From Podarcis erhardii (lineage: Eukaryota): a DNA stretch of 64,000 nt. The position numbers were made by a program, and so were the translations under genes. The stretch lies in assembly GCA_964252035.1 (NCBI GenBank), contig OZ176213.1; one strand, given 5' to 3'. The notes under the pieces are model-generated. The model did no database searches. It had not been told where the DNA came from and saw nothing but the letters and a program-made list of their open reading frames with translations. Positions 5,900-31,751 of the stretch are shown here, piece after piece (within the stretch, counting starts at the first letter, position 1; the number at the start of each line of letters is the position of its first letter).

Positions 5900-7400
5900 T
5901 TCCTTTCGCCCGCCTTTTTGTGTATCTTGTGTTTGCGTGAGGATGGTGGCTCCATCAGGGGCTGCTTCGGCCGCCAGCTTCCTTGCCCTCTTCGCTATAT
6001 CGGAGGGTTTAAGCCCCCCACCCATCTTCCAACCCTTGTATTGAATGCAAAGTCCCCCTACCCTCCCAAAAACTATGCCTGAGCTTCGCAACATCTGGGG
6101 AGGGGAGGATGAGAGGGAGAGAGAAAGGGCGCGTTCATGAGGACTACAAAGTTGCAAATATGGCTCCCCAGTCACCCTCGTCTGATCCGCTGCGAAGAGG
6201 CAATGAAAACTGGTGATCGCCCCCCAAGTCGCTCACAGACCCCCCCCCCCAACCTGCCCGGCTCCAGAACCTGATCCTAGCAAACTCCTCCAGTCCCCGC
6301 CGGAGCGCAGCGCCAACTCGACAAACCATTATTATGCCGAGGCTTTTGCGACGCGCTTTCCCGGGGCGCTATTTTCCCTGCCACCCGGGCAACCAAACAC
6401 GAAGGAGACTTGCCTTGGAAACCGGGTGGTAATTTTTCTTACCCCCCCCCCCCGCCCCATCTTTGGTCAGACTCGAACGCGTGAGCTTTTGGGCACCCCC
6501 CCCCATGTGGGTACACACAGCCACGCGCGCGCGCACATACACACCGTGGGCACCTCAAGGGCAGCAAAAGCACCCACGACGGCAGCTGGCACAGACGGCG
6601 CCCACCTCTCCCCACGGCGAGCGTGCCCCCTTACTCCTGATGTATTGGCTCTCTTTTTTGCAAGCTGCCCCCCGTACCAACACCTTCTCACAAAGCCCCC
6701 CGCCCCACATTACAAAAATAAAATAAAAATCTCCTTGCACAGGCTTACGTCGGAGGGCGTCCTGTTCCGCAGCTCTAAGTGGATCCTTTTCTTCATGTCC
6801 ATGTCCCTGATTCAGCAGGAGGCTCGCTCCGTCTCGCTGCGCTGCGCTCGGCTCCCTCTTTTGTATTGACACCAATGGAGCAAGCCAGGGACCCCCCCTC
6901 CCGCCCCCCCGACCAAAGCCAGCGCGCGAGGCAAGAGGGACTTTGAGCGCTCAACCAGCTCCGCTCGGAATCCCCCAACGCGGCCAACAAGCGCGCACAC
7001 TAACCTGATAACTGCGGGGGCGGGCGCTTGCCGAAAAAAAAGCTCCTCCGTTACGGACGTGCGCGAGAGCCAACCGGAGTTCGGGGAGCGCACACGCGAT
7101 CCAATGGGGAGCGACCAAGGGCGGCGGGGGCCAATGGGAGAGTGCGGCACGGTCGGCCAAGGAGGACAGCCCGGTTGGGAACCAGCGAGCTGAGGCGCAG
7201 TCGGGACTAGCCGCGGAAGGCGACGGGTGGAAGAGCTGCCGGAGGCTGGATTCGACGAGCGAGCAAGCGAGGAGGGGGCCTTTCCCGCGCCGGGGTGTGC
7301 GTGTGCGCGCATTTGCGAGGACGGTCGGGGAGGAGGACCAGCAATGGGGAGGGGCTGTTAAGCAGAAATGTGTGCGGTGGGGTCTGTATCAAAAAGTGGG
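5900..7400 (-). promoter_or_regulatory. CpG-island promoter of ANP32A with CCAAT boxes
   Basis: GC- and CpG-rich segment around exon 1. CCAATGG motifs at 6872, 7101 and 7131, plus GC-box-like runs. Confidence 0.75.
6749..6802 (-). CDS. ANP32A: ANP32A coding exon 1 (acidic leucine-rich nuclear phosphoprotein 32 family member A); the rest of the gene lies beyond the left edge
   Basis: The reverse strand reads ATG GAC ATG AAG AAA AGG ATC CAC TTA GAG CTG CGG AAC AGG ACG CCC TCC GAC | GTAAGC, giving MDMKKRIHLELRNRTPSD plus a canonical phase-0 donor. This is the ANP32 N-terminus. The A paralogue is assigned from synteny with SPESP1 and NOX5. Exon 2 (VKELVLDN...) was not found in 1-6748. Confidence 0.93.
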
Positions 7401-10400
7401 TTACTGGTGGGTGGGTAGGAGCACTGCTGACCCTGAGATGAAAGGGGTGGGGATAGAAGGGAGGGACGGAGGGAGGGAAGAGGCTGGGGATGCGATGGGA
7501 GCGCTTAAAGGTTGTGGGGCTGTAGAAATGGGAAGGGCGAAGTTGTGGGTCTGCGTTAAGGGTTAGGAAATGAACGGATTCAGGGAGGGAGCGAGGTTAG
7601 TTTGGATTTGGAAGGAGGGCTGCCTGGGAGTCATTATGGGATGGGAAGAGGATATAAGTGATCTGGGAATTATTTAAAGCTTAGGAAGCATAGGTCGTAA
7701 TTTCTAATGCATGAAGCCTGTACTTTAGAGCAGCGGATGCTCTGAAATTGAAAAGACGAGGCTAGATCCAGAATGGGGCTGGGAGTTGACAGGTGGGTTA
7801 GAATTTTTGGCAGGGGAAATAGTTCAGGGAGGTGTGTTGTGAAATGGGTTGCTCTGTTGAAAAGAGTTGAAGGAAATTAGATAGAAGACTGAGAGTTTCT
7901 TGAGGGGGGGATCATTGTGATGGGGAATGGCTGGACAAATCCTAGCTCCATATTGCCCTAGCATCTAGAAATGTGGCACTGTCTCCTAGAAATATAAACA
8001 CTTCTTTTCCAGTTGTAGGGTGGGTGTGGCTCCTGAAATGAGAGGGCTGGCTTTGAATACAGGAGTCAAGTGGGAAATGAGTAGAAAGAAATCTTGCAAG
8101 AAAGTGACAGTGTTCCCCAAGATAACAATAATTGCTGTCAAATGTTGATAGTTTTCATGGAATAAAAACTATCTCAGAAATAAGAGGTGGGGGACACTTG
8201 TTCTTTCTGTCTGATGAGGATAGGAAAAGAAGCAATAGTAGTCAACTACAAAAAAGGTAGAGCATATGTTTAAAGATTAGGCGGTCCCCTTATATGAATA
8301 GTTCAGCAATGGTGTAAGCAAGGGAATGTGAGGAAAAGGCGGTGTTTTAAAGTTGCTGGTGGTATTATACAGTCAGCAGCACTGTTGGGTAAGCAGGAAC
8401 TGTGCCTTGAAATGATGCAAGTAGGTCTAGGCAGAATTCCTATTGGGCAATGAGCAACAGTATTGGAAGGTGTTTGTTAAAGTTAGGGCTGAATGTAGGG
8501 CTGGTACTTCGAAATAAAATAATGCATGCCAGGACTGAGTTGTTTACATTGAGGGAGAATTTGGGGGCTGTCAAATGGGAACTGCTGCAAGAGAGCTGTA
8601 TCTCAACTATGGTGTCTGATACAATAATTTTTGCAAGTTCCTTTCCCCTGCATTTCCAGCTAGGGACAAAAAGAAGGCAGAATCCATCAGAAGAAATTTT
8701 GAAGCAACAGAAGGGGTGTACTCCAATGTGACTGCATTTCCTCCCCTAATATCCAGGCTTGTTTGAAAAGAGGTGTGGTTGGTTTGGGAGGGTTGTCTTT
8801 TGTTGGCACCCTTGCTGTTGGCCTATCTTGTTACACTTCTGCTTTCCAAGCAGTGTCACACGTCTCTTCCCTTTCATTGCACCTCTTGTACTACTCCCCA
8901 GAGTGAAGAGGAGATCTTTTGGTAATCACTGGGGTATTTATAAAAGGAATGCTTGGTACTTGCAAGCTCACTTTCTTTGGAGGACTTCCAGGACTTCAAG
9001 CTGCAGGATCAGAAATAAAGTTCATGTGGGAATGCTATTTAAACAGGGTCATACTGTTATGTTAATTGCTCTTGTCACACTGACGAACCTTCAGGTATGG
9101 ACTTGTGTCTCTTCTCCTTCCTCCCAAGGCTTGAAATCTTGCTCTTGGTCCTCCCAAGCAGCGAGGAGCCTAATCAAGCATGATAAACTAGGATGCTAAG
9201 TTGGATTTCTTCTTGAAATCTTCTTGAGTTTCATATGTTTAAAATACTATAATGGATTTTAGTGGAGGGCTGACTTTCTATATTTTCACATGTGATAATT
9301 CAGGGAAGATTGGCAGGATGCAATTCACCCTTCAGTGAAACCTCTAAAGAACCAAATAAGTTGCATCAGTGTTCTTAAGTTGGTCTCTGTGTTACCCTTT
9401 TAATTGTCAATATCAGCATATTCCAGTGGTAGAACTGTTTTAAAGTTCAATGGTTCAGTCATCATAAAGTGACTTTGGTATTCCAGCATTCTCCTTTTCA
9501 GGCAGTGCATCAGGAGAGGTCTGCTGAGCTGTTTGGCTATTTTAACTGGAACTGGCATAGTCAACAAGTCAAGGGATGGATTTTCTGTAAGACTTCCTAA
9601 AGATCAGTTGGCTATGGACCATATCTTTTATCTAGTCTTGTAGAGAGGTTAGGGGAAGGTCAGCTCGGAGGAAAAGAACATAAGCCACAAGGACATGTGG
9701 AGTTTGTTGGCATTTTTTAAAGCCCCATGAGTGAGCTTCAAGAACCATGAAATACACAGCACTTGAGCTCAAACATTTACTTTGCATTACATAGCGACAG
9801 TAAGAGAGGTGACAGCCATGATTCTGGGGCCAAATGATTAGATGACAAGCAACTGCTAATATTTCTGCCTAGCCTCAGTGCTTGGGAACCCAAGCTGTAG
9901 TGCACGAACACTCGCATTACTGCTGCTCTTTCTCAGTTTTCAGTATGCAACGTGCTTTATAGTCTTCAGCTGTTAGGACTAAAGATTCAAGTACCCACAA
10001 AATTTAAGTCTTAAAGGAGGATGGTATCTGGCATTGAATCTCTGAAAAATGTTAGCATAAATTAAGCACTTGCAGAGCTGTAGGCATTCTTGTCTTCCTC
10101 CCCGCCCCCGCTTTTCTGTTTTTGCAGGTATGGGGAAAACAGTGATCAGAAGATCACTGTTTTGCAAGCCTTGTACAATTTCATAAGGTTCTGCTGTTTT
10201 GCCTCTAAAACCAGCACTGCGAAATAACAGCTTTTTGTAAAAGTGTGATCACACCAAAGTTCAGTGAGAAATACAAATGGAAATGGTTGCTCTCTCCCTT
10301 GCTGCAGGAACCCATTATTCCAAAGGGAATTAAAAGCACATACTTCTTACTTTTTTTGGCACTCCTTCCCCCACTGGAACATAAGTGACTTCAAATGAAA

Positions 10401-14500: not shown

Positions 14501-14759
14501 AACTCCCAACTGCTCCGAGTCCCTGCCAGCAGGGCCAATGTTGGTCAGGTGGGAGTGAGAATCCAACAACATCTGAAGGGTACCAGGTTGGGGAGGAATA
14601 ATTATAGAGAGGGCACAACGGGGCAGTGTTTTGTACGTGTGTGGCGAATTAAGTCAACTGGAGGGAGGGCGAAATTCCCTCCCCTCCGCCTTATCAGGGA
14701 CGGGGGGGGGGGGGAACATGCGAGGCCTTCCAGGTGTTCGGACTCCCACCAGCAAACAT

Positions 14760-15420
14760 CTGGGGAGCCGCCCTCCTCCTGCGGTATAAAAAAGGCCCTT
14801 TTAAAAGGGCGGGCGACGGTGGTGGGGTGTCCGTGAGGAGGAGGTGTCCGTAGGGGAGCGCACAGGAGCCCCGCTCCTTCTCAGCCTGTTGGGAGCCGAG
14901 ATATTTGGGTTCTCTGAGGGGAAGGAAGGCGGCTGAGGGGGAAACGAAGAAGAGCCCGCGCCGCCGGGTTCCTTCCCTTCGCTCGAGGAGGAGGGGGGAG
15001 GGGCGGGCGAACGGGCGACGGTTGCTCTGGGGTTCCCGCTGCCGCCGCCGCCGTCTCCCGCCATGAGGAGCGCACGCCCGGAGGCCTAGTAGCCGCGCGC
15101 CTGTTGCGAGAATGGTGGGGCGGCGGCGGCGGCCCTGGCTCCTCCTCCCGCCGCCGCTTCTGCTGCGGGCCCTCCTCCTCCTCCTCCTCCTCGGCTTCCT
15201 GCTGCCGGGAGCACCGGCCCAGCGTGAGTGAGTTGAGGCAATGGCGAGCGCCGCCTTCGCTCGCTGCTTCTCTGGCCAAGCATGGAGGGGACTCCCCCCC
15301 CCCGCACCCTGAAGAGGGAAGGGGCGCCCCCCAAATCGGCCCCCTCACCAGCTCCTGGCGCCCCTGAGTATGGCCTGCTCCTGCTGACTCGAGGGGCTGC
15401 CTGGATGGGGTTAATAGCCA
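14760..15420 (+). promoter_or_regulatory. CpG-island promoter of the SPESP1-like gene, with TATA box
   Basis: CpG-rich island containing TATAAAAA at 14785-14792, a 16-bp palindrome at 14795-14810 and the signal-peptide exon at 15112-15223. Confidence 0.7.
15112..15223 (+). CDS. SPESP1: SPESP1 exon 1 (signal peptide MVGRRRRPWLLLPPPLLLRALLLLLLLGFLLPGAPAQ)
   Basis: Basic n-region, long hydrophobic h-region and APA cleavage-like motif. Followed by C|GTGAGT (phase 1). Not present in the supplied ORF track. Confidence 0.72.
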
Positions 15421-17689
15421 CAACGAGGACTTTGGCACCTTAAAGTCTGATAGTTGTTATTATATCCGATTCTAGTCCTCCGCAGAGGGCACCTATCATT
15501 AGCTTCAGTGGGTCTGCTCTGAGACGGGCTAGCCTTGGCTATTACAACCCTTTATTATTAACAATCACGAGGTATTAGTTTTTAAGATGCTACAGGACTT
15601 GCTGCTCTATTTTTATTCCCCCGGGAAAGATGAGTAGGGTTACTCCTCTGGAAATGATTTCACTTTCTGATGTGCTTCTCACTCGGTGTAGGGTATGTGT
15701 GTATATATTGTCGGCATCCATCAGTCTCGAGATAAAATGGAGTGCACCTCCAGAGGTGAAGTCAAACCACTGTGATAGTAGCACTGAAGTGATATCCTCG
15801 AGGCACAAGCATGGGCGGTGTGTGTGGAGGTCCTGGGCTGTCCAAACAACAAGATCCCTCTCTGCCTCACTTAAGTGTTCCAAAGGAAAGCAGAGCAATA
15901 CCTTTGGCATCAACTGTGCTGTACCAGTTGCTGGAAGGAAGCGAACAAAACACTATCCAACTGCCCTTGGATCGCCACTCTGGATTTGTGAAGGGTTTAC
16001 TCCTTCAGCCTTTTCATGTCCCAAAGATGTCCCCAAAAGCAGCAGAGGTTTAGGATTCCTTCTGCTAGATAAGCTACCTTCCCAGGCTCATGAGCCTTGT
16101 ATGCCTCCTTCCAGCAACTCCTGTAGCCAAGCTGGTGCCAAATGCATTGCTTTCCTTTGGACCACATCAGCGAGGCTGAGAGCGGGGTCTTGTTGTCTGG
16201 GCAGCCAGCTCAGGACCTCCATACACACTGCTTAGGCTTGCGCCCTGAGGAGGTCACTTCAGTGCGCCCAACACAGTGGTTTGACTTCACCTCTGGAGGC
16301 ACACTCCATTGTGTCTGAAGACAGACGGATTCCAGCAATATCCATAATTCTCCTGAATAATCTTGACCACCTTACAAGGCCTAGAAAAGGGCAGGAATGA
16401 TAGTTAGCATTTATATAAGTGGGAACCCAATGCCCAATTAATGTGAGTGTGCAGTTCTCTCTCTCTCGAGAGTGTTGGGCATTGGATTTCCACTTATATA
16501 AATGCTAGCTATCATTCCTGCGCTGGAATTATTTTACATTTTTAAATGTATGTTGTCAATCAGTATTATGTATGCAGGCTTCCTCTAAAGAAGTAAGCCT
16601 CTTTCTGTGGTCCCTATATCAGAGATAACTAGCCTGGCTTTGATTTCCACCCAGGTATTGCAGAGGATTTTTTTTGTGTGTGTGTGTGTGTTATTAACAC
16701 CATGTAGTATCATTGCCACCTCCTAGAATTTATGGACTACTAGTTACTTGCTTCAGCAGTGCTGCAAAAAAGTTTAACAGAAGGAGCCACATCAATAGGG
16801 TGACTGTGATCAAGTATAGTCATTGGTACCAATTACTCTTAAGAGCATATATACCTTTGCCTTCCTGTTGTTATTTAAATGAAAGACTTTTTGTGTTGCA
16901 AACCACCTTACCAGTCAGCAAAAGGCAAGTGATTAAGAGAGACAGGGACAGAATATAAACATTTTCAAAAATTTCAGGGAGCATAAGCAGTCATCCATTT
17001 GGCAATCCAAATTCATCTTGAAAGAAAGTAGGTTTTCACAATACTTTAGCAGAGAAGTCCTTCCCCCTGTGTGGTGTTGTTGCTTAGTCGTTTAGTCGTG
17101 TCGGACTCTTCATGACCCCATGGACCAGAGCACGCCAGGCACTCCTGTCGTGTGTTAGTAAAACACAATTCAGATGTTCAAGGGGTGAGAAGAGCCTCTC
17201 CTTCAGATATTCAAGAGCAAGCAGGCTTATAGTAGAGGAGATGGTTCACATCATTTAATTAATGGAAAACAGATAACTAATTTCTCTAAAGAATCCTGGG
17301 AACCATAGTTTGCTAAGGATGCTGGGAATTTTAGCTTTGTGATGGGTAAACTACAGCTCCCAGGATTCTTTGGGGGAAGTCATGTGCTATAAATATATGG
17401 CGTGTATGAAGTCACAGTCCAGTTCTGTGCTTAAGTTTTCTTTTAAGTATTTTTCAGCTCTTCACCTTTATGAATTGTAGCTAATAAGCTTTACACCAGG
17501 TGCCAAATATGTCTGCTTCCATAGCAGCTCTAAAGTTTTCCTACTATTGAAAGATGCTTGGCCAGAATAGATACAAGAGTCTCCAAAGAAGTACCATAAC
17601 TGGACCTACAGTAGGAAAAAGCCTCTCTATATTCCCTAGTGTTTGAAATTGGTTGGTTTGACTATTATTACATAGTGGTCAAGAGCCTT

Positions 17690-17749
<60 letters not shown>

Positions 17750-20700
17750 AATGTTATTATTTGTACCCTGTCCATCTGACTGGGTTGCCCCAGCCACTCT
17801 GGGCAGCTTCCAGCATATAAGATGGAAAGTGAAGTACAGTAAAGGGAAAGGGGGAAATACAAAAAACCGAGGAATCTCTTTCTTCAAACTTTTTTTTTAA
17901 AGGGGGATACTCCCTCTGTCTTCCTATTGTAGTACATACTCAAACTTGGTGACATTGATTGGTTATACCATACATTCAGTTCTGCATATAGATAAATAGA
18001 TACTGCCTATATATTTTTTTACTTTTTTGACATTTGTTAATTTAAGACTTTTTAAAAAAGAATTTGCCTCCCCTTTCAGCATATAAAATGACTTTCTAGA
18101 CTAGAAAGATGGACAGGAAGGTTGAATGTCAAGTTGCAGCCGATCAGGCTGTTCATCCAACATTATTCATAGCAGTTTGTGAGAAATTTTCAAAGATGAC
18201 AGCTAAGTACCAGTCAATTTTCTTGACAACCCAGGTCATCTTCGCTTTCTTCCATTTGCATTTGTCCCCCAGAGGCAGCAAAATATAAGGCAGCCACCAG
18301 AGACTTCCTGTTTTCTAAATTTGTGTGTGTGTGTGTGTGTGTGTGTGTAAGTTGACCTGGTTCCAGCATTACTAATCAGCTAACTCTTTTAATGATACCT
18401 TTTAAAGATACAAATGCTCTGCTTGAACTTTCTTTTTATCCATTTGGGCTTTCTATTTATTCTTACGGTGTTATGTCAGAGATGCTAAGCAGTCTGTCTG
18501 TTTTCCATTCACTGAGAAATTTAGAGCATTGTCTAGACAAGGGTAGTGTCAGATTTCTTTTGAAAAATTAGTTTTATGTTTTATTTATTGCATTTTAATA
18601 ATTGTACACTGCTATAAATCCCCCCCAAAAAGGTAAATCAATTGCACATACACTTAAAATCAAGAGCATAATTTTCTTCCTTGGGGAAGATTAGAATTTT
18701 CTACTTTTGAGAATCTGTTCCTAAAATTCTCATGCATATTGCAATCCAGATATTTTCCTCCCAGAACAGAATAAATAGGAACCTGCTAACTTACTGTTCA
18801 CATTAGAGAAGGAAACAGGAACACTTGCATCAATAAACACTCCATTCAGAGGCTCAATGTTTCTGCTATCTGTGATGGAAACTGGGCCTTAGCCTACCAA
18901 AGTATACTCAGAGTAGACCTACTCAAGAGTATGATTTGGTTGGATATACGTAATTCTCCCCTTCCCCCATCTTTTCCCTTCTTCATTGATGTGCACATGT
19001 GTGTGAGAGAGATGGAGGCAAGAAGAAGTTTTCTTTTTCTTCACTGAGAGTATTTTATGAACTTCACAGACAAAATAATCTAGATTTGATACCTATTTTG
19101 CTTTCATTGGCCTAAAACTTTTGAGCATATTTCATTACCTTTCAAAGTTCTAAATACCCTTTTATAATTTCGTGCATGCTGAATATGTTCACCATGTTTG
19201 TATGTGTCACCATGATGCGTATGTGTGAGTGTTTAGAGCCTGTTGCAGGATGGATGGTGGTTAACAGATTGAGGATGAATCCCGACAAGACAGAAGTACT
19301 GTTTTAGGGCGGACAGCGGGTGGGTGGGGGTGAGGGAATCCCTGGCCCTGAATGGGGTAACTGTGCCCCTGAAGGACCAGGTGCACAGCCTGGGACTCAT
19401 AGCTGTCCATGGAGGCACAGGTCAATTCTTTGTCCAGGGCAGCTTTCTACCAGTTCCATCTGATATGCCAGCTGAGACCCTACCTGCCTGTGCACTGTCT
19501 TGCCAGAGTGGTACATGCTCTGGTTATCTGACTACTGCAATGCGCTGTATGTGAGGCTACCTTTGAAGGTGACTCGGAAACTACAACTAATCCAGAATGC
19601 AGCAGCTAAACTGGTGACTGGGAGTGGCCACTGGGACCATATAACACTGGTAAGAAATGATGTACACTGACTCCCAGTACATTTCTGAGCACAATTCAAA
19701 GTGTTTAAAGCCTTGTATACTTGAAGGAGCATCTGCATCCCCATCGTTCAGCCTGGACACTGAAGTCTACCTATGAGAGCCTTCTGACAGTTCCCTCACT
19801 ACAAGAAGTGAAGTTACAGGGAACCAGGCAGAGGGCCTTCTCAGTAGTGACACCCTCCCTGTGGAGGGAGATAAAGAACTACACAACTTTTAGAAGACAT
19901 CAGAAGGCAGCCCTGTATCAGGAAGTTTTTAATGTTTGGTGTTATATTATGTTTTTATATGAGTTGGAAGCCATCCAGAGTGGCTGGGGCAGCCCAGCCT
20001 AATGGGGTGGGGTAATTAATAATAATAAAGAAAAATTCAAAACGTAGCTGGGCATCAAACCACAATATCTGTGTAATCAATTCATATATTAAAATTATTT
20101 TCTAAAGTTTCTTTTGACAATATTGTTTCAAAATGTTGAATAAAATTCTAGTCCATCTCCTTGATTCTCTCTTGGTATCCCTCCATTTGAAAAATGTCAC
20201 TTCCAGGTCATTTGAAAAAGGTCACTTCCAGTCTGCCTTTCTATTGTTTTTTTTTAAATAATAATAATAATCATTTGTGTTTGCTACCCTGGCTCCTTTG
20301 AGTGGGGGAGGGGGATATAAACAACAACATCCCAAAGACTTTGGACCACATATTAAAAATGATGTGTTTGGCCTCTTTGAGAGTACCAGCATTGTAAAAT
20401 TAATCAAAATGTGGTGAAAACCATGGTGTTTAATTTTCTTTTCTTTTCTTTTCTTTTTAGGTGTGCATCATACTTTTGACAATATTAAAGAAATGCAGGT
20501 AACATTAATTTTAGTATTTGGGGAAATGTCTTTGGTCTGTCCATGAAGACTTTCTGGAAACTTCAAGTTATCTCAGGGTTTTGTCTGGGACCAGCTGATG
20601 GGTTGACATTACACTGTCAGCTTCACTTTGTCCTTTTTTTCTGGGCTCAATGCAAAACTCTGGCTTTGTCCTTTACAGCAAGAAAAAGCTGGTGGGGTCG

Positions 20701-23700
20701 GGGGAAGCACCTAAAGTGAACAAAAAAAAGGAGAACAGGTCCTGGTGCTCACTAGTACAAAACTTTATTTTATCTCAGTGCATTTCAGAGTGAAACACTC
20801 CTTCGGGAGATTTAAAAGCTTGCAAGGTCCTAAAATTCAGAAACATCTCACTTCTGGGTTGGCGCCTCCGGCAATGGCGGAGTTCCTCCGATCGGGAGGA
20901 ATTTGCTCCGTGGAAATCAGGGTCTGACCGCCACGGCGAAGGCGGAGACCCACTAAAATCACAGGCGGGAGAAGCTTGTGAACGTGGGATTCGGCTGGCA
21001 CCCTTTGCATCTCCCCTCCTCGCAGGGAAACCCAGTTTTGGGGATCCGGAGCGACGTGGGGTAAGTGACGCGGTGCTTCAAATTGACTGCTTTTTTCATG
21101 GCTGTTGCTGGAGAGCGCTGACTTTTTCCTGTGGACAATTTGACTCTAAACAACTACCCGTGAGTAGAACGGAAAATTGGATTTACAAACGTCTTAATTT
21201 GGTACCGAAACAGGAAGGTTTCAAACAGGAAGTCCGCCTTCCCCTTTTGTAAATAGATTGAAGCAAAGAAGCTGCAAGCTAAGGTCTTGGAAAGCCTTAT
21301 GTAAAGGATTAAACTTCCATCGATTAAAATCATTAAACCCCCTTGGAAGCAGGAGAAGAGGGGGGAAATTTTGGATCGTATAAGCCTGCAGGAGAGAGCG
21401 ATAAAAATTAAATTACCACTGCTCTGAACCTGGAAATGGGCTGCCAGTAGATTGACGTTTTGGGAGAGTTCATTGACTGTGAATAAAACGTATGTTGACA
21501 GTTAGTTAAATAAGAGAAATATATTGTTTCCATTGCCCTCTTCTGCATTTAAAAAGGAGGAAAAGTAACTTAAAATTGAAAGTAACTTTACTTTTGGAAC
21601 TGTGCTTGAAAGGATTGATACAAGTGGAGACTGTTTTCCCTCTAGAGGAAGCTTTTGAAACTGTTACAAGAGTGGAGCTGGGGAATCTCCAGCTGCAGGA
21701 TAAGAACTGTGAGAATCAGGGATTGACCTTGGACTATTTAAGAATGTCGACAGGAGAAGCCTTAGTGATTGCATTATGTAAGATAAAGCTATTCGTTGGA
21801 ACAGCTTCACAAGAAGACGGATGTTATGACTACCAAAATTGATAACTTGGGATAAAAAGTGATTAATTTGGGACAAAAAGTGAGCACCAATACAGAAATT
21901 ATTCAGGATTTGCTACAGGAATCTACTATAGCAGAACAAAATGTGGAGAAGGAGAAGGAGAAAGTTGTTGTTGTCAAACCTAAAGTAATACAAGTGGGAG
22001 CCTCAGCTTTACAGAAGCAAATTGAGGACTATAAGTTGAGGCCTTTTATGATTGAATCTAGAAAAAGTCAGATTTTGAGGATCGGAGCCTGGCCTGGACT
22101 GGAGAAGGAAAGCTGGAAATATCCCTCCATGCAGGGATTAACTGACTTTTAGGACATGGGCTTGGGTCAGGAGGAGACTGGAGTTCGGGGGGGGGGGGGC
22201 TTTGGATTTGGAGGAATCTTGAAACATGTCCTGAAATACTTTATGGATTTTAGCTGTAACTATGGAAATTTGGCTGACCTGTCGCGAAGGAATAAAAGTA
22301 TTGTTAGGTCATAGTTTCCTTGAGATCTGCTCTATAGCATCAAAGAATATAAAGAAGATCTGCAGAAGGGACTTGGAAAAGAGTTAAGAGCCTCGGATAT
22401 AAGATCTCCAGGTTGATGGCCTGTATGGAGTTGACGGAAGTGACTGGCAGAGTCCGAGACCGGGGAGAGGAGATGGTGGAAGAAGATTGGGAAATTGAAA
22501 GTCTATATATAGAAATATTGTAAAATTAATGAGTGATAGAAAAATGTTGGAATGAAATTTTATGGCCTTAGTAGAAATGTTATAAGGAGTTAAGCTTAAA
22601 TAAGTATATTAGTTTTAACGGAAATAAGATTAAAAATATGTTAAGACATTTATATGATAGAAAATAGAGAAAGATGGAAAGGAATTGCTGAAACAATTAA
22701 TAGAAGTGGAATACAAAAAGGGAGGAGAGAGGAGGTCGATGAAACAAGGGAATGAAAGATAGAGTATGGAAAAGGTATGATGTATGCTTTAAAATTGTTT
22801 TTGTTTTGTTTTGTTTAGCTTATTGTGTTTAGTTTAATGTGTTAAGGTTGTGTTTTGTATTGTTTATATATTGTATTGTATTGTTTTTTCTCTTTTTTGT
22901 TTTCTTTCTCTTGTCTTTTTTCTTTTCTTTCTTTTTTGTAAGCTTTAAAAGTAATAAATATTATTTTTTTAAAAAATAAAATTCAGAAACATCTCATTCT
23001 TAAAATCTGAACATTACAAAAACCAGCTTGATAATGTGGTATCAGAAAAGTGTATTCTATATATACATCTATGTATATACATCTATGTATGAATTACTTT
23101 TCAAGCTTCTAAGGAGAAGTTGGATCATTCTGAAATGCGTTGAACTACAATTCAGAGTTTTGTACCTATGAGCCTCAGAGCTTGTTCTCCCTTATGCTTT
23201 GATCTTTAAAGCCCTGAGCAATCTAGGAACTGAGTATTTTAGGAACCTACTCTTCCTGTACAGATATGCCTGGAAGCTTCCATGTCTGAGACCCTTCTCT
23301 CAATGAAATGTAGGCACAAGGACAATTTTGATGAGGTTGCCCAGATTGACTAACTGATGGGTAATTTGTTGCTCAAGTTGAGGCAAGTTTTTTAAAAAAT
23401 CAAGTCCCCCCCCCCCAGTTCCAATCCTTAGAGGATGTGTTCCTTCTTAATAATTCCTGTTGTTTTGTTGTTGTAATTTATTTTGCCATTTTATGAGCAG
23501 CTGCACCTGCTGTAATTCCCTCTTCTATGCAACTATGAAAAGTGCAGGAGCCCTGACTTCTCTTTTTCCTGGGAACCCTAGTTCACGATGTGGCAGAGAG
23601 GTTGTCTGGGAGTGAAGGAAGGCACGGTGTCTGTGAGGCAAGGTAATTCAGATTGTCTTAGGGCTGTTGACGGCTCTCCCATGCCGTGGTGAGATTTTCC

Positions 23701-25740
23701 ACAAGATGCCGTGCCTCTCCCTCTGAGGAAGTCTCCCTGGGGTTTTAATTGGGCAGGATCCTGACACCTGGCCATAGTTTTTATTTTCTTCCTGTGCTAA
23801 ATATGTTGGTATCAATTACCGTACATCCTGGCACATGGGGCTTATTTGGACATATGCCAAATGATGGGAAATCTTGCTGTTGCAGTGAAGTAACAGTCAT
23901 CTGGGAATGACTAGGGTTCTTACTTATTTTGCAGATCGCTCTGAACCCAACTATGACTGTGCAGATTTCATCAGAGACAGCAGACAATCTTCAAGCTCTA
24001 GGTAAGCACTCATCTTTTACTTTTCCACAACACCTTTGAAAATCCTTGCTACAGAATTATTTTGAAAGGTCCTTTTCAGAGAAGCCAGTCACTAGAAAAA
24101 TGGATCGTTGTCTCTGTTTCCATGTTCTAAAACAAGGAACATCAATTCTAGGCAGAACAAGACCTATGACCCAATGCTGTGCAACACATGGGTTGTGGTT
24201 TGCTGCAGTGTAGAGTGGGCCTTAGAAACTGTTGCACTTATAGAGTAGGAGAAAGTGAGCAAGAGATGGGTCCATTTGTGGTTTACATGACCTCATTTTC
24301 TGCTTTACAGAACCCTCTCATATATTTGAAGTGGAAACAACAAACGAAGAAGAGAAGACTTTGAATAACCTTGTAGGCCTTTTGCAAGATATGGTGAAAA
24401 ATATTCCAACAGCATCAGCGCAAGGACAAACACCAAAACCAACAGAAACCGCAACTATCGTAATATCCCACCCAGAGCCTTCCCACCCAGAGCCTTCTCC
24501 ATCTGAAACAGTGGGCACAGTTTTGCTAAACCTGAATCCAAAGACTGAGGGAATACAAGTAGAGACGTTGGAAACAGTTGCCCTGACCAATGAAAATACC
24601 CCAACTACCTCAACAGCATTTTGGGACCTCCGAAATGACGCAGGTGCATCAGTCGTTTTACATTCTGATATAGTCACTCCGGAAGGAAATACTGAAGAAC
24701 AAACTGAGACAAGTGTATTTTATTCTGCTGAAACTACTCCAGATCAATCACTGGTCAGTGTGTCATTTTTGTTGGAAACGGATACTACCACGCAAAAAGC
24801 TATGACTTTTGATCAGCTAACAAATGGAGCTTTGGCAAGTCTGGTGGAGTCTCTAAGGAACGTGAGAAAAATGCATGTGAAACTAACTCATACCAGTAAT
24901 GAATCAAAACACGGTGAAACTGCTGTGACACAATCCCCAGAGAAGTCTGTAAGTGCAGAAATCTTGGAGTTGATTGACAGACTCATTGAAACCATTAAGA
25001 ATGCACCTAGCGCAGTTATAGAAGATCCAGCTCTCAATACCTATCTTGGAAAAGCAGAGAGCTACCTAAAAAGTGCTCTGGAACTAGCGGGTGAAGCAGA
25101 GAAGAGGTTGGGAAAGGGAAAAGCAGAGGAGGTGGTGGAAGTAGTGATTCCTTCCACAGGGTCTGAGAATGTGACAGTGGTGATTCCTTCCATGGAGGCC
25201 GAGAATGTGACAGTGGTGATTCCTCCCTCAGAGTCCGAGAAGGTGACAGTGGTGACTCCTCACAAAGAGTCTGAAAAAGTGACGGTGGTGATTCCTCACA
25301 CAGAGCCTGAAAAGAAGGTGGAAGCGCAGGGTCCTCCATTGGGCCAGGAGTGGGTGGAGACAGAGAATAAGGTGGAAGTAGTACTTCCGCCCTTGCCATC
25401 AGAAACTGTGCCCGTATCGACAGTGGCAGTTCAGTTGCCTGCATCTCCACCTGAGTCTGTAGCAGAAAAGGCAGAAGAGGCACAAATGGAAATGGGGAAG
25501 TTAAAAGCATTCATTAACTTGCTGTATGGTTTCAGTCCCCACCTAACTGCATATGCACAGAATTCGGCCAATAAAAAAGTTGGTGAGGACATTGTTGATA
25601 GAGCAATGGCAGTCCTTCATGCCATAAAAAGCATTTTCTGTGGAAATCCTGAAGGGCAAAGCAAACTGATGTTGCAGCAGTTGTTAAAGGAAGACATGGA
25701 GCTTGTGAGACAAGCCATGAAGGAAAAAAGAGTCTCTTAA
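15112..25740 (+). CDS. SPESP1: Sperm equatorial segment protein 1-like, join(15112..15223,20461..20498,23935..24001,24311..25740), 548 aa
   Basis: Four GT-AG exons with phases 1/0/1 sum to 1647 nt, an open frame ending in TAA. N-terminal signal peptide. The last exon has blocks resembling human SPESP1 (EEEKTLNNLVGLLQDMVKNIP; STAFWDLRNDAGASVVLH; YLKSALELAGEAEKRL; KAFINLLY; AMAVLHAIKSIFC). The position between ANP32A and NOX5 matches known synteny. Confidence 0.82.
15736..16310. repeat. Long inverted repeat (arms about 15736-15948 and 16096-16310)
   Basis: AATGGAGTGCACCTCCAGAGGTGAAGTCAAACCACTGTG... recurs as a reverse complement ending at 16310. Confidence 0.85.
16391..16521. repeat. Near-perfect 47-bp-arm palindrome (hairpin)
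   Basis: Arms 16391-16437 and 16475-16521 differ from perfect complementarity at 3 positions. The loop is 37 nt. Confidence 0.9.
17073..17150 (-). mobile_element. Bov-B LINE extreme 3' end
   Basis: TTAGTCGTTTAGTCGTGTCGGACTCTTCATGACCCCATGGAC is the reverse of the Bov-B 3' terminus. Confidence 0.7.
17690..17747. repeat. (AAC)n microsatellite; others: (CAG)n about 1309-1340, (AAT)n 11546-11586, (GT)n 18323-18348, (ATTT)n 38208-38250, (CT)/(CA) 48670-48714, (GT)n 57681-57724
   Basis: Seen directly in the sequence. Confidence 0.95.
19232..20028 (+). mobile_element. L2-like LINE 3' fragment
   Basis: GACTACTGCAATGCGCT..CAGAATGCAGCAGCT RT-end motifs and an AGAGTGGCTGGGG..(AAT)n tail shared with other copies in the window. 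Confidence 0.8.
20461..20498 (+). CDS. SPESP1: SPESP1 candidate micro-exon 2 (38 nt, (R)VHHTFDNIKEMQ)
   Basis: Very long TTTTC pyrimidine tract ending TTTAG and a CAG|GTAACA donor. Phase 1 in and phase 0 out fit both neighbours. Confidence 0.62.
20851..22976 (+). mobile_element. L1-derived non-autonomous element (HAL1-like): CpG-rich 5' UTR, decayed ORF1, L1-type 3' end, no RT
   Basis: Flanked by a perfect 20-bp direct repeat TAAAATTCAGAAACATCTCA (20831-20850 and 22977-22996). ORF1-like pieces at 21576-22152 include ESRKSQILRIGAWPGLEKE. T-rich 3' UTR, AATAAA at 22953 and an A-rich tail. Confidence 0.75.
23935..24001 (+). CDS. SPESP1: SPESP1 candidate exon 3 (67 nt, IALNPTMTVQISSETADNLQAL)
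   Basis: TTATTTTGCAG acceptor and G|GTAAGC donor. Phase 0 in and phase 1 out fit exon 4. Confidence 0.7.
24311..25740 (+). CDS. SPESP1: SPESP1 terminal coding exon
   Basis: The TTTACAG acceptor at 24310 opens into the 469-aa ORF of the track. SPESP1-like blocks are present, and ATTAAA follows at 25880. Confidence 0.9.
25135..25314 (+). repeat. Coding minisatellite, 5 x 36 bp (V-T/E-V-V-I-P-x-x-E/G-S-E-N/K)
   Basis: Units start at 25135, 25171, 25207, 25243 and 25279, e.g. GTGACAGTGGTGATTCCT...GAGAAT. Confidence 0.9.
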
Positions 25741-25879
25741 GAAGACACATTTGTTTCTTGGTTAGGGTAGATATTTTTCATCCAAGTTATGTATCACTAG
25801 AGATCAGTTTTGTTGTTTGTAAGATCCATTTACATATATACATATATATCCATCGTTTGTAGCCCTTTCCAAATCTAGA

Positions 25880-25885
25880 ATTAAA
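25880..25885 (+). terminator. Candidate SPESP1 polyadenylation signal ATTAAA
   Basis: 140 nt after the stop codon and followed by T-rich sequence. Confidence 0.5.
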
Positions 25886-28699
25886 TGCTTATTTTTAAAT
25901 ATTTTTGTTTTCATTTTTCATCCTCAGTTTGAATTGATATTCAGGATACTCACTGTGGAGTGTGAGTTTATATTTAAGATAATTTAAGTCACCAGTTAAG
26001 GTTTAATGTGAAAGGTTATTCAAGGGACCACCTGAGTTAAGGCACAAGATTATTACAGAAGCTGGTTTTCACCAGAGAAAGGAGTATATGTACTTCTTTT
26101 AAATGTCCTTTTCCCTCCCATGTCTAAAATAATGTTTTACAGTGCAATCCTGTGCATGTTTAATTGATTGCTTTTTAACATGTTTTTAAGCTGTTTCTAT
26201 TCTAGTTGTAAGCCACCTTGAGTCCCAACAGGAGATAAGGCAGGTGATGATGATGATGATAATAATAATAATAATAATAATAATAATAGCAGCAGCAGCA
26301 CAATATAAGGCACTTCTTGCCTTCAGAGGTCACCATAGCAGTGTGGTGGTGGTGTTATAAAAAGAGTTTTCTCAATGGATCAGACAAGGGCCATGTAGTC
26401 CAGCACCCTGATCTAGCATTGACCAGATACGCCAGGAAGCTCACAAGTGTTTTTGATGGTAATGACCATTTCTTGTTGCTTGCCCCTTGTGTTTGGAAGT
26501 GAGGTATTTTGCCTCTATAGATGTAGGTTCCATTTTTTAGCTTTACTAGCCAAGAGTCGCTGATAGATCCAGTCTGTGTGGATTGGCCTCATGGTTTCGT
26601 TTTGTTTCTAAATAATGTTGCTAGTGGTCTTTCAGCAAAAATCCCTGTAAGAACTGTGTGTTATATGAAGATGGTAGACAAGAGTGGAAGGAGAATATTA
26701 AAACTAACAAAATGTAGCGCAAAGGCAATAAAATTCCAGAAGAATTAAATATTCCTGGCAGTAATGGAAGAGCTATATGATCCCTCCCCCCAAAAAAAGT
26801 CTATGATCATGTGGAATTCTGATTGTTTAAATTCTTTCTCCTTTGTTACTCAAATGAATAGTGGAAACAAATAGATTTAAATAGGTTACAGTTTGTCCTA
26901 CTACTTACAAAAGGTTTCATGGACAAGAAGAGGCTAGTCATTATGCTTTTGTTTCTGCATACAGCTAGTCATCAACACCTGTTTCTGGGTTGTTGCCTAA
27001 ATTAGAGCAGCCTTCTCTGTCTTGTTCAGAGTGCAGTCTGACTTGACTGTTCATCAGCAAAGAAGATACTAAATTTTGCATCTCAACAAATGGCATTTTC
27101 AGTATTCAAGTATGTTTAAAAAGTATGTTTAAAAATACTTTTTTGTACCATAGGATCTCCTATGGTACACTAGGTTGCATCTTTTTTTATACTGAGTTAG
27201 AAAGTGCAAGAGATTCTGTAAACTGCTGGGAAGGGAAAGAAGTCTGAGGAGCTAGACAAAGAAGTCTCTGGGACAGACGTTGCAGGTAACACACAGCTTT
27301 TTTTGTCTACCCCTGAAGTGTGTGGCTTGACTAGCTTGCATGAGTCTTCTGGAGTTACTCATTTTTATGGTCTCTTTATGCTCTCTGCTTTGATGTATAT
27401 CATCATGTGAATTGCTAGATAAATCTGAGGCAAGGATGTGTGTGCTGATGAATGAATTGTCCTTCCTCTGGGCAAGGAGGTTAAATTAAATGACCCTTTG
27501 GTCCCTACCCGTCCTGTGATTTGGGTGAGGTACATCATGAAAATCTCATTTCATGAAGTTTAAGGATGGTGGTTATTTTTGCCAAGGGAAGTGGATCATT
27601 ACTTGGCCATGAGTGTTAATAGTCATGCTCAGCTGAAAGAGAACAAACTTATTTGAGACTTAAGTCAATGATACTGCATTAAATGGCATTCACGGTAACA
27701 GTCCTCCCCTGAATAATGTGATTTCCATCAAATTGCAGTCTGACAAAAAGAGAGCAGGGTGAAGGTGTGCACATATTTCTGCAGTGTTTTTCAGTGTGCA
27801 CAGAGCTATAAATTTTATAGCCACAGCAATCTTCCAAGGTAGGTTACATTGAGGCTCAGACTGACTACTCAGTGCATTTCATCACAGTAAACCTGCTTCT
27901 CTCATGCCACAACAAATCAACATTTGCCATATTATACCACTGGTGGCTCTAATCTGGTTAAGTAAAATACACATAAACAATTTCTCCTTCAGGCTGGGCT
28001 TTACCTTCCAAAACAGGCAGCTTAGCTCTCTCACACATTATAGCATCTTTTCTGCATCAAAAAGAGAAAAATATAAGTAGCTTCCTTGCTGTTACCTGGT
28101 TTTGACATTCCCATAGCAACCCACCTCCAACTTTGGTGTCACAAGCTCACCCATCATCTGTTGCTTTACAAGCAGGATTCTGTTCAAAGATGAGTAAAAA
28201 GGCTGTGACATGAATGGGACATATTTTCCTGTGTGTTTCTGACAGCTAGAAAATAAAGGCACAGCATGACTCAGGTTGTGTGGACATGATCCAATCTTGC
28301 AAAGGTTAGGTACTTTAATTAATGTAAAGAAAAGACAGGTGTCATCACAATCAGCTGCATTTTAAATATAATGCAGCAATAAATAGCCAATCTCAAGCTG
28401 AGGATAATGCAGAAGAAAAATTTGTCATGAGATGAGAATCTTGATACTTAAACAAACAGGCAGAGGTTTAACCAAATTGGTTGGCTCAAATCTATGCAAT
28501 AGGTAATAATACAGCTGCTTCTCTTAGCTATCACAGTACCAAGCAAGAAGATGGTGTATTTGTTTAGTTGCTCACAGATAAGGCACCAAATAGTGTGATG
28601 ATTTGGCACTAGCGTCACTGTCACTGAAAGTAACAAAGGGTTCAGATCTGTAATGGAAGACTTGTGAAGTTCACCAAATGTGGCATCCACTTTTAAGTC

Positions 28700-29295: not shown

Positions 29296-31208
29296 GCCTG
29301 ATACGGACAGCTTAAACATAAAAAATTACAGACCTATCTCATTGCTGAACAATGATTATAATTTTTTTGCGGGAATAATGGCAGACAGACTCAAAAATTG
29401 CTTAAAAGATCTCATACATAAAGACCAAGCCGGATTCCTCCCAAATAGACAGTTAAAGGATAATGTCAGACATATTATAAATATCATAGAATATCTAGAA
29501 GTTAAAAATGAAATACCGGTGGCATTACTGTTTATAGACGCTGAAAAAGCGTTCGATAACGTTTCATGGCAGTTTTTGTTAAAGTCTATGGAGGAAATGG
29601 GGATAGAGGGCAACTTCATAAAAGGCATAAAGGTGATCTACTCTAACCAAACAGCTAAATTAATTGTTAACAACAATCTGACAGACACATTCAGCATTAT
29701 GAAAGGAACAAGACAAGGTTGCCCTCTCTCCCCTTTACTATTCATAATGGTTCTAGAGGTCATAGCGAATAAGGTGAGATACACGCCAGAGATACGGGGC
29801 ATTAAAGTTGGAACAAAGGAATATAAGTTGAAAGCTTATGCGGATGACCTAGTGTTATCGTTAGAAGAACCACAAATAAGCGTCGGTAAAGTTTTGGAAC
29901 AATTAGATGAATTTGGCAAAGTATCAGGTTTCAAACTAAATAAAACAAAGACTAAAATGTTGGTGAAAAATACAGATAGGAATACACAAGAGAACATAGA
30001 ACAGGAATGTGGAATTAAGATTTCAAAAAAAATCAAATACTTAGGTATTTGGTTAACTTCAAAAAATATCAATCTAATTAGCGATAATTATACACCTATG
30101 TGGAAAGAGATTAAAAAAGACCTGGATATATGGAATAGGCTAAAACTTTCATGGTCTGGAAGGATGGCGGCAATCAAAATGAATATCCTGCCATAAATGC
30201 TGTTCTTATTTCAAACCATCCCAGTAATTAGGGGCTCTGCGATCTTTAAAGAATGGCAAAAAAGTATTTCAAAATTTATATGGCAGGCAAAGAGGCCAAG
30301 AATTAAATTTCAAATACTAACAGATAGGAGAGAAAGAGGGGGCTTTGCCATACCAAACCTAAGATTATACTATGAGGCTTCCAGCCTGTGTTGGCTTAAA
30401 GAATGGATTACTCTGGAGAATTTAGATCTGTTAGATCTAGAAGGCTTTAACAATAGGCATGCTTACTTGTGGCTAAATAAAGGGAAGGTCCATAAAGGAT
30501 TCTCCAATCATATTTTCAGAGGAGCACTGCTTGAAATTTGGAAAAAAATAAGAAACTTCTAGAAAAGAACACTCCTTGGTGGTTATCCCCAACAGATATC
30601 TTAACAATAAAAAAGGTAAACATGGAAGTGAAAAGGCTAACATATGAAGACATATTGATTAAAGCGGAAAAAGGTTGGAAGATCATGAATTGGGGATGAA
30701 ATTAAAAGAAAAGACCAAAATTTATTTCAGTACGCGACAACGGCAGCTAGGATATTGATAGCTCAAAAATGGAAATCAGTTGAGATTCCCACGATTACAG
30801 ATTGGCAAACAAAATTATTTGAATATGCAGAATTAGCAAGAATGACAAACAAAATCAGACATCAAAAAGAAACAAAGTTTACTGAAGAGTGGAGTAAATT
30901 TGTGACGTATATTGAAAGAAATTGTGGTAAATTAAAAATTACAGCAGGTCTAACATAATCCTTGTTATGCGTAAATTTTGGAAATGGAAACTGCAGGAGA
31001 AGAAAAAATGTAAGAAAACCGTAGCAGGATAGGAGGGAGGTCAAAATGTGTGTTAACGCAGTGTAAATAAGTGGATGATACTTAACAGTGATTGATAAGA
31101 GTGTTTACTGTTTATTTTTATATGCCCTTTTTTCTTCTGTTATATGTTTTTTGCTTGTGTGGAAATCTCAATAAAAAAGCAAATAAAAAGAAAAAAAAGG
31201 GAAAAAAA
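29296..31208 (+). mobile_element. 5'-truncated L1-clade LINE (ORF2 reverse transcriptase fragment, inactivated)
   Basis: RT motifs DAEKAFD, GTRQGCPLSPLLF and YADD in ORF 29342-30196. In-frame stop at 30194, later frameshifts and a deletion, and a poly(A) tail. A 20-bp TSD GAAAGTCATCAACCTGGTAA lies at 29276-29295 and 31209-31228. Confidence 0.95.
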
Positions 31209-31631
31209 GAAAGTCATCAACCTGGTAAAATGAGACACAATCTTCTCAGTCTCTTGAGATAGGTATGAATTCCAGGGAAGCACTCCAGGTACAAATGAAG
31301 GGCTATAACTCACCTCAGAAGCAGATTTCAGAGTATGTTTAGTTTACTATTCTGTTTTTACCAGCATGTGGATGCCATTCATATTTTCTGCCTACTATAC
31401 TTTCTGGCAATAAAATCTTTGCTGTCACTAGGGTGCAATATCTAATTGCTCACAAAACACTGAATGACTGTTCTCTTTAACTAACATGTTCCGCCATACC
31501 TGGGATGGTTCCTTCACATTACTTACAATGCAAAGTTCAGATCAGAAATCTTAACAACCAGCCCAAAGTTGACTGCAAAAAAATAATAATAAGAAATTAA
31601 AGGTCCTGCTGGTTTCCAATTTCTTAGCACC

Positions 31632-31751
31632 ATGAACTTAGATGATGACACAAAGTGGCTCGAGTGGGTAGCCAAACAGTTTGAAAGTATCGCCGGGGAA
31701 GATAAAGAGATCGACCTGGAAGAATTCAAAGCTGCTCTCAAGGTGAAGGAG
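31632..31751 (+). CDS. NOX5: NOX5 coding exon 1 (MNLDDDTKWLEWV...KVKE, EF1)
   Basis: Acceptor TTCTTAG at 31627, GCACCATG start context and a GC-type donor GAG|GCAAGT. Confidence 0.9.

Follow-up and report, generated by a model that had tools for sequence, protein, structure and literature searches.

The window, a stretch of 64,000 nt from Podarcis erhardii, carries the SPESP1 orthologue of a lacertid lizard in four coding exons on the + strand. We assign a probability of roughly nine in ten (0.88) to the overall explanation, a lacertid SPESP1 whose four exons encode a 548-aa secreted precursor with a conserved 35-aa N-terminal stretch. The gene model comprises the following features:

14750..15250, no strand assigned: small CpG island around SPESP1 exon 1 (GC 0.64–0.75, CpG o/e 0.75–0.89)
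15112..15223, + strand: coding exon 1 (ATG at 15112; 37 codons plus 1 nt, ending in phase 1; GTGAGT donor at 15224)
20461..20498, + strand: coding micro-exon 2 (38 nt, phase 1 to 0; AG after a polypyrimidine tract, followed by GTAACA)
23935..24001, + strand: coding micro-exon 3 (67 nt, phase 0 to 1; AG acceptor, followed by GTAAGC)
24311..25740, + strand: coding exon 4 (1430 nt including the stop; AG acceptor; Pfam PF15754 match; covered by RNA contigs)

The exon lengths of 112, 38, 67 and 1430 nt sum to 1647 nt, giving 548 codons plus the stop. The required frame is open in each of the four exons, the intron phases across the joined exons run 1, 1-to-0, 0-to-1 and 1 with canonical AG/GT sites, and the codons split at the joins, C/GT and G/AA, encode R and E. 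The four-exon, 548-aa model proposed in the first-pass annotation is reproduced exactly in coordinates, splice sites, phases and frames, and its N-terminus equals those of the best Podarcis relatives, which correspond to the exon 1-2-3-4 join. A transcript without exons 2 and 3 would be 105 nt shorter and still in frame, as had been calculated before, with C/AA as the junction codon. Translation of exon 1 yields, as judged by eye, a basic n-region, a poly-Leu core and a small-residue GAPAQ end, a pattern that is kept in relatives; the translation equals the leader of the Podarcis proteins P0001 and P0002 apart from four extra Leu. The CpG island spans this signal-peptide-like exon, as had been claimed, and is distinct from the ANP32A island (~4000–7500). 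Micro-exon 2 encodes the 12-aa peptide VHHTFDNIKEMQ and micro-exon 3 encodes 22 aa with an internal Met (MTVQISS); profiles of these peptides match within the window at E 4.5e-6 (exon 2) and 3.9e-11 (exon 3). Exon 4 comprises the SPESP1 family region together with a variable block of 12-aa repeats and a helical C-terminus that is conserved. The agreement of the exon model with the annotated Podarcis N-termini and with the profile matches is far beyond chance. A look-alike of the exon 2 peptide on the minus strand (16532–16555, E 2e-4) was discarded as a chance match of 8 codons between stops in an AT-rich intron. Promoter and terminator predictions, being based on a bacterial consensus, have no bearing on the eukaryotic SPESP1 gene.

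Searched alone, exon 4 matches the Pfam profile PF15754 (SPESP1) with 34.4 bits, above the curated gathering score of 27 (E 1.8e-8; positions 6–285 of the 322 in the profile). A profile of the squamate relatives, run against 1.84 billion representatives, matches SPESP1 of platypus (E 8.4e-11) and of two rodents (E 3.4e-9 and 1.6e-5) as well as the named SPESP1 of a crocodile, a turtle and a skink, and 22 of 22 matches belong to the SPESP1 family. Both searches bear out the earlier naming of the gene. All 33 relatives obtained by word search are squamate, the best being Podarcis models of 556 and 543 aa. Alignment of 26 amniote sequences reveals that C524, L485 and L538 plus neighbouring residues are invariant or nearly so. 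The AlphaFold2 fold was made on P0001, a near-identical database protein standing in for the window's 548-aa protein, and predicts helices at 464–552 with low confidence. Based on the 26-sequence alignment, this model reaches a mean pLDDT of 44 (~25–30 in the micro-exon stretch) and a pTM of 0.20, and is therefore uninformative on the 35-aa stretch and unfit for fold searches. A profile search of the PDB returned no match at E<=1.

As in other amniotes and presumably also in human, SPESP1 has ANP32A on one side and NOX5 on the other. The first exon of ANP32A is found on the minus strand (~6761–6795); at the P. muralis locus, an LRR gene is found upstream and NOX5 4.2 kb downstream of SPESP1, and the ibis locus has an LRR gene upstream, too. 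A single genomic region spanning both NOX5 and SPESP1 has been described (PMC11554360). Transcripts in this neighbourhood cross gene borders, as indicated by an alligator model that fuses SPESP1 exons to NOX5, and the upstream LRR gene model of P. muralis ends just 1.5 kb from the SPESP1 ATG. The exon at 15112 might, on these grounds, be part of another unit, for example as an alternative first exon of ANP32A or NOX5, with the SPESP1 leader located elsewhere. We consider this highly improbable, however: the exon encodes a textbook leader, more than 10 squamate and turtle models have its counterpart ahead of the same micro-exon peptides, platypus, skink and turtle share with the window a phase-1 donor following the leader, and the usual ANP32A first exon is ~8 kb off in its own CpG island.

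RNA-derived contigs came from two related lizards, organism A (X1) and organism B (X5 and X9), and none from the window's species; the RNA runs were compared over one 6-kb stretch, outside of which exon 1 lies. The GT..AG joint 20498>23935 is present in the contigs of X5 and X9, and the joint 24001>24311 in those of X1, X5 and X9. Both junctions had been predicted from the genomic sequence, and the spliced contigs show that SPESP1 is transcribed in related lizards. In one bulk RNA data set (X23), no reads fell on the SPESP1 exons. The X5 and X9 contigs extend ~121 and 24 nt, respectively, 5′ of exon 2, and these additional nucleotides do not match 20300–20423. For the window's species, we infer the exon 1–exon 2 junction 15223>20461, which is supported indirectly. 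The Logan-contig proteins P0007, P0014, P0020 and P0027 were rejected as evidence on the upstream exons, being ORF calls that start inside the last exon.

The contigs of organism A add one further feature upstream of exon 3:

23643..23934, + strand: 5′ extension of exon 3 in organism A, corresponding to the end of intron 2 (X1 contig; non-coding, with an in-frame stop)

Here, a 1293-nt contig with a depth of 338, averaged over the whole contig so that local abundance may differ, joins 23643–23999 to 24309–25242 and lacks exons 1 and 2. Upstream of 23643, X1 contains only one other contig, which is separate (341 nt, depth 4.8). In-frame translation of 23643–23934 encounters stops, and the first in-frame ATG is the Met of MTVQISS. 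The extension represents either an alternative start or a retained intron, and this dominant transcript contig of organism A, which begins within intron 2 and lacks the signal-peptide exon, matches the "truncated" models of Zootoca and Elgaria. The main lacertid transcript could, in principle, arise from an internal intron 2 promoter near 23643, omit exons 1 and 2 and start translation at the exon 3 Met without a signal peptide, leaving the four-exon form as a minor product. This would account for the X1 contig, which continues without a break from 23643 into exon 3 and has 24001>24311 as its sole splice, for exon 2 being covered by no X1 contig, and for database models that begin at MTVQISS (Zootoca) or within exon 3 (Elgaria). 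We nevertheless regard it as unlikely. The organism B contigs use the exon 2–exon 3 junction and run further upstream, signal-peptide-bearing models are known from Podarcis, Rhineura, geckos, snakes and a turtle, and the intron 2-derived extension carries upstream ATGs in addition to the in-frame stop and may be a retained intron. Mammalian SPESP1, moreover, is an acrosomal protein of the secretory pathway (PMC5320423).

We return to the four-exon precursor as the preferred reading. The first-pass annotation had warned that automated annotation could truncate the protein, and the models of Zootoca, Elgaria, Pogona and Varanus indeed lack the signal-peptide exon. Most models are annotated as 'uncharacterized' or misnamed; many entries from reptiles that go under 'uncharacterized', 'FKBP5-like', 'mucin-2-like' or 'rickA-like' prove to be SPESP1. 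The view that the signal-peptide exon and the micro-exons are hidden did not hold, with RefSeq models of two congeners already carrying them. The four-exon model is not new, the same N-terminus being present in the NCBI models of P. muralis and P. raffonei.

Two regions of the locus differ among close relatives:

25140..25310, + strand: tandem repeat in exon 4 (36 nt, equal to 12 aa; 4.8 copies; Tandem Repeats Finder)
20831..22976, no strand assigned: L1-like insertion in intron 2, outside the gene product (an X1 contig joins 20830>22977)

The copy number of the 12-aa repeat varies among species, and organism B has one more copy than the window, visible in the RNA contigs of X5 and X9 as a joint that goes back 36 nt. 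SPESP1 protein lengths among relatives range from 543 to 837 aa. Organism A has an empty site for the intron 2 insertion, the X1 contig joining its two flanks with a 20-nt overlap.

We examined the micro-exons across amniotes. Turtle SPESP1 contains micro-exons of 38 and 67 nt, identical in size and phase to those of the lizard, and the micro-exon profiles match the turtle locus at E 4.4e-5 and 1.1e-11. Homologues are also found in alligator (38 and 64 nt) and ibis (30 and 70 nt), among the reptiles and birds in which a search had been proposed. The 35-aa segment is likewise encoded in geckos, snakes, an amphisbaenian, agamids and a monitor. Mean pairwise identity amounts to 0.52 and 0.45 in the two micro-exons versus 0.33 in the first 150 aa of exon 4. 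Platypus and rodent have only the flanking phase-1 intron, in which protein and nucleotide profiles detect no micro-exon relic, and both micro-exons are missing without trace from the gap-free 8.7-kb phase-1 intron of Tiliqua. The divergent ibis copies are found by nucleotide but not by protein profiles of the micro-exons; the evidence for absence in platypus, rodent and skink is therefore mainly that of the nucleotide profiles, and very diverged relics are possible.

The segment is common to squamates, a turtle, alligator and a bird, which is at odds with a narrow lineage-specific gain, one of the two options initially considered. The 35-aa segment is the standard sauropsid form, lost in a skink. 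The segment may be ancestral to amniotes and have been lost on the mammalian stem, as later in skinks, rather than gained on the sauropsid stem, and we see the chances of this history as even. Tiliqua demonstrates that loss is possible, having no micro-exons while geckos, lacertids, snakes and others keep them, and the segment equals the protein core in conservation. Against this history, the platypus and rodent introns show no relic although nucleotide profiles find the divergent ibis exons; no non-amniote SPESP1 to polarise the change was found in the profile search of the 1.84 billion representatives, and one gain and one loss are equally parsimonious. Going beyond this, it is conceivable, if rather doubtful, that the 35-aa stretch acts as a functional module at the N-terminus of mature sauropsid SPESP1, retained for ~280 million years and lost independently in mammals and skinks, and that lacertids possess in addition a signal-peptide-less isoform from an intron 2 start. 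If true, one gene would give rise to a secreted acrosomal form and a non-secreted form.

In the mechanism that we propose, transcription would proceed on the + strand from the small CpG-island promoter, and splicing of the four coding exons would yield the 548-aa precursor. Exon 1 would supply a putative cleavable signal peptide directing the protein into the secretory pathway, with presumed cleavage placing the conserved 35-aa stretch, encoded by the micro-exons, at the N-terminus of the mature protein. By analogy with mammals, SPESP1 may then reach the acrosome and help to organise the equatorial segment for sperm–egg fusion. The 35-aa stretch is flanked by the same phase-1 boundaries at which, in mammals and the skink, the signal-peptide exon is spliced straight onto the large exon.

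The analysis provides a correct, evidence-backed SPESP1 model for this lizard. Our literature searches yielded no account of reptile SPESP1 or of its exon structure, nor of the small comparative point made here, namely a sauropsid insert of two micro-exons after the signal peptide, its absence in mammals and its loss in a skink. This exon layout is useful for studying the evolution of amniote sperm–egg fusion proteins; the view of how the protein works is unchanged.

Comparison with known SPESP1 genes starts with the two NCBI models of congeners, P. muralis LOC114584774 (556 aa) and P. raffonei LOC128402030 (543 aa), both labelled 'uncharacterized protein'. They share with the window the signal-peptide exon, the two micro-exon peptides and the junction residues R and E, and exon 4 is 94–96% identical. 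Compared to both, the window encodes 4 more Leu in the putative signal peptide; it has one 12-aa repeat fewer than P. muralis and one Lys more than P. raffonei. The 2.1-kb L1-like insert in intron 2 is absent from a related lizard. In the turtle Emydura macquarii (XP_067412186, 423 aa), the gene likewise consists of four coding exons and agrees in phases and splice-site types, but the leader is longer, the repeat block is absent and identity to the lizard protein is ~35%. The skink Tiliqua scincoides (XP_066491484, 837 aa), whose protein is named SPESP1, uses the same phase-1 donor and acceptor, but joins the leader directly to the large exon and shows a huge repeat expansion.

Mammalian SPESP1 (platypus XP_028921347, 376 aa; rodent models of 356 and 393 aa) resembles the lizard gene, with its putative signal peptide, in the phase-1 intron that follows the leader, one large exon opening with E-E-K/Q-T/N-L...V..LQ and a conserved Cys-containing C-terminal helical region, and belongs to the same family by profile. 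Unlike the lizard gene, it has two coding exons, as the first-pass annotation had stated for mammals; this layout is borne out by platypus and a rodent, whose intron is the same phase-1 one. It also lacks both the 35-aa segment and the 12-aa repeat block. The mammalian proteins are ~200 aa shorter, with only ~24–28% identity. Mouse knockouts and antibody inhibition have established a function of SPESP1 in equatorial-segment integrity and sperm–egg fusion (PMC5320423).

We verified the SPESP1 reading frames in the window one exon at a time. The gene comprises four coding exons:

15112-15223, plus strand: exon 1, ATG at 15112, GTGAGT directly after 15223
20461-20498, plus strand: exon 2, long polypyrimidine tract and AG before, GTAACA after
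23935-24001, plus strand: exon 3, AG before, GTAAGC after
24311-25740, plus strand: exon 4, AG before, reading frame open to the stop codon at 25738-25740

The exons sum to 1647 nt (112 + 38 + 67 + 1430), corresponding to 548 codons plus stop, with phases of 1, 1-to-0, 0-to-1 and 1 and split codons for R (C/GT) and E (G/AA). Splice sites, lengths and per-exon frames thus bear out the coordinates, phases and 548-aa frame proposed in the first-pass annotation. Its further proposals that skipping both micro-exons (exons 2 and 3, encoding a 35-aa stretch) retains the frame and that the signal-peptide exon lies in a CpG island likewise hold: the shortened frame lacks 105 nt, and a 500-bp island surrounds exon 1 (GC up to 0.75, CpG o/e 0.75–0.89). 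An 8-codon upstream ORF (ATG...TAG) at 15063-15089, out of frame relative to the SPESP1 ATG, would be a 5′ UTR element provided transcription begins upstream of 15063.

The translation of exon 4 scores 34.4 bits against the Pfam SPESP1 profile (PF15754; curated cutoff 27), in agreement with the proposed identity. A word-based protein search returned 33 relatives, all of them squamate, led by Podarcis raffonei (96%) and P. muralis (94%), which places the source of the window among lacertids closely related to Podarcis. We further built a profile from 17 squamate sequences and searched it against 1.84 billion representatives at E<=1e-3. Only 22 matches were obtained, none from other families; those that can be named are squamates, a turtle (Emydura), crocodilians, an ibis, platypus SPESP1 and two rodent SPESPs, and the few others are Logan/ENA records resembling reptile or bird sequences. 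Synteny fits the assignment. The first coding exon of ANP32A (MDMKKRIHLELRNRTPSD) lies at ~6761-6795 on the minus strand inside its own large CpG island (4000-7500), about 8 kb from SPESP1 exon 1; an LRR gene is found upstream of SPESP1 in both P. muralis and the ibis, and NOX5 follows 4.2 kb downstream in P. muralis. In P. muralis the LRR gene model (275 aa) terminates as close as 1.5 kb to the SPESP1 start codon, which suggests that ANP32A has an alternative first exon farther upstream, close to the SPESP1 island.

Splicing was assessed by comparing window positions 20300-25900 with three small exon-containing runs of related lizards (X1 from organism A; X5 and X9 from organism B) and with the raw RNA run X23. 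Two of the proposed junctions were observed as GT..AG joints: 20498>23935 in contigs of X5 and X9, and 24001>24311 in all three runs, which hold RNA, since their contigs are spliced. Upstream of exon 2, the X5 contig (1682 nt) carries about 121 further nt and the X9 contig 24, none of which match 20300-20423; this sequence is therefore spliced to something farther upstream, consistent with exon 1 (15223>20461), which lies outside the compared stretch. X23 yielded no reads on the SPESP1 exons within 20300-25900. The gene call and the observed structure are correct, and the results as a whole show a spliced, transcribed and conserved SPESP1 gene.

Organism A displays a different transcript. A 1293-nt X1 contig runs continuously from 23643 through exon 3, with 24001>24311 as its sole splice; it stems either from an internal start or from a retained intron. 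Its depth of 338 is a whole-contig mean, so isoforms cannot be ranked from it; upstream of 23643 there is just one further X1 contig, a separate one of 341 nt (depth 4.8), and exon 2 is covered by no X1 contig. The extension from 23643 is non-coding, with indels between species and stops in the exon-3 frame, so that the first in-frame ATG is the Met of MTVQISS. This transcript, which matches the Zootoca and Elgaria models, would yield a protein without signal peptide. Also within intron 2, an L1-like insert (20831-22976) is missing from this related lizard, in which an X1 contig connects 20830 to 22977 with 20 letters fitting both sides. The joint looks like an empty site with target-site duplication, and the insertion is therefore recent; every RNA run covers the 3′ part of the insert (22357-22917) very deeply, as expected of a multicopy repeat.

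The 35-aa stretch was found in amphisbaenian, geckos, snakes, agamids, phrynosomatid and monitor, and also in Emydura, Alligator and ibis. In the turtle locus the micro-exons measure exactly 38 and 67 nt (sites AG/GTAAC and AG/GTAAG); they measure 38 and 64 nt in Alligator and 30 and 70 nt in ibis. SPESP1 has two coding exons in platypus (5001-5074 and 20570-21630 of locus L003) and in the rodent Perognathus, the layout given for mammals in the first-pass annotation. Platypus, skink, turtle and the window all have a phase-1 intron after the leader; mammals therefore differ solely by the absence of the two internal exons. Micro-exon protein and nucleotide profiles gave no match in the gap-free platypus, rodent and skink loci; the nucleotide profiles do pick up the divergent micro-exons of the ibis (E about 2e-4). 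In the skink Tiliqua, where the leader is spliced straight to the large exon over a single 8.7-kb intron, the absence is a secondary loss within squamates. Given this distribution, the stretch is not specific to lizards. The two scenarios raised initially, a lineage-specific gain (here on the sauropsid stem) and a loss on the stem of mammals, require one event each and are equally parsimonious, because the profile search (1.84 billion representatives, E<=1e-3) found no non-amniote relative. Judged by mean pairwise identity, the stretch is no less conserved than most of the protein (micro-exons 0.52 and 0.45; first 150 aa of exon 4, 0.33; repeat block, 0.13; C-terminus, 0.61).

The Alligator GenBank model KYO20928 is a chimera (29365-32431 and 44562-47215 of locus L005): through a splice at 32431 it connects the SPESP1 micro-exons and the beginning of the large exon with EF-hand exons of NOX5, which lie 12 kb farther downstream. 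It reflects either transcriptional readthrough or an artefact of annotation. In the ibis Theristicus (locus L006, 33850-34725), alignment of the turtle protein with the large exon passes through frames 1, 2 and 1, and the SPESP1 models comprise only 128–149 aa; the gene therefore looks frameshifted or decaying, with micro-exon homologues still recognisable.

In mammals, SPESP1 maintains the position of both the equatorial segment and its fusion-related proteins, and sperm–egg fusion is severely reduced in the mouse knockout (reviewed in PMC5320423). By analogy with this mammalian work, the leader would direct the lizard protein via the secretory pathway to the acrosome, where it may hold the equatorial segment and fusion-related proteins in position; the 35 extra residues would lie at the N-terminus of the mature protein. 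For the near-identical protein of P. muralis, AlphaFold2 gave a poor model (mean pLDDT 44; 25–30 across the 35-aa stretch), with helices confined to the conserved blocks, and a PDB profile search (E<=1) found no relatives of solved structure.

The anticipated truncation by automated annotation applies to part of the public models. Those of Zootoca (from a Met) and Elgaria begin within exon 3, those of Pogona and Varanus have different leaders without signal peptide, and the majority of relatives' records are labelled ‘uncharacterized’ or misnamed (FKBP5-like, mucin-2-like, rickA-like); the P. muralis and P. raffonei models carry all four exons. Several snake isoform models (P0028, P0030-P0033, P0036; 256–406 aa) are missing the conserved middle of the large exon, which suggests removal of an intron from inside it. 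A divergent SPESP1-like protein of Anolis (P0041) lacks the micro-exon segment and starts with a leader of its own, and one Phrynocephalus (agamid) genome contains three SPESP1-like models (P0029/P0038/P0042); these are possible lineage-specific duplicates. A 36-nt repeat in exon 4 (12 aa, VTVVIP..ESE-type; 25140-25310) varies in copy number, with one extra copy in organism B and different expansions in P. muralis, Zootoca, Rhineura (610 aa) and, most of all, skink (837 aa).

In the models of P. muralis (556 aa) and P. raffonei (543 aa), the leader, R, the 12-aa and 22-aa micro-exon peptides and E are the same as in the window, and exon 4 follows. The upstream exons are accordingly not hidden from annotation, and the four-exon structure is not new, two congeners having already been modelled so. 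Compared with both, the window carries four more Leu in the CTC run of the leader (15160-15195; 7 versus 3), a length polymorphism within the hydrophobic core of the signal peptide; it has one 12-aa repeat fewer than P. muralis and one Lys more than P. raffonei. What the comparison adds is modest: the pair of micro-exons is pan-sauropsid, missing from mammals and lost in one skink.
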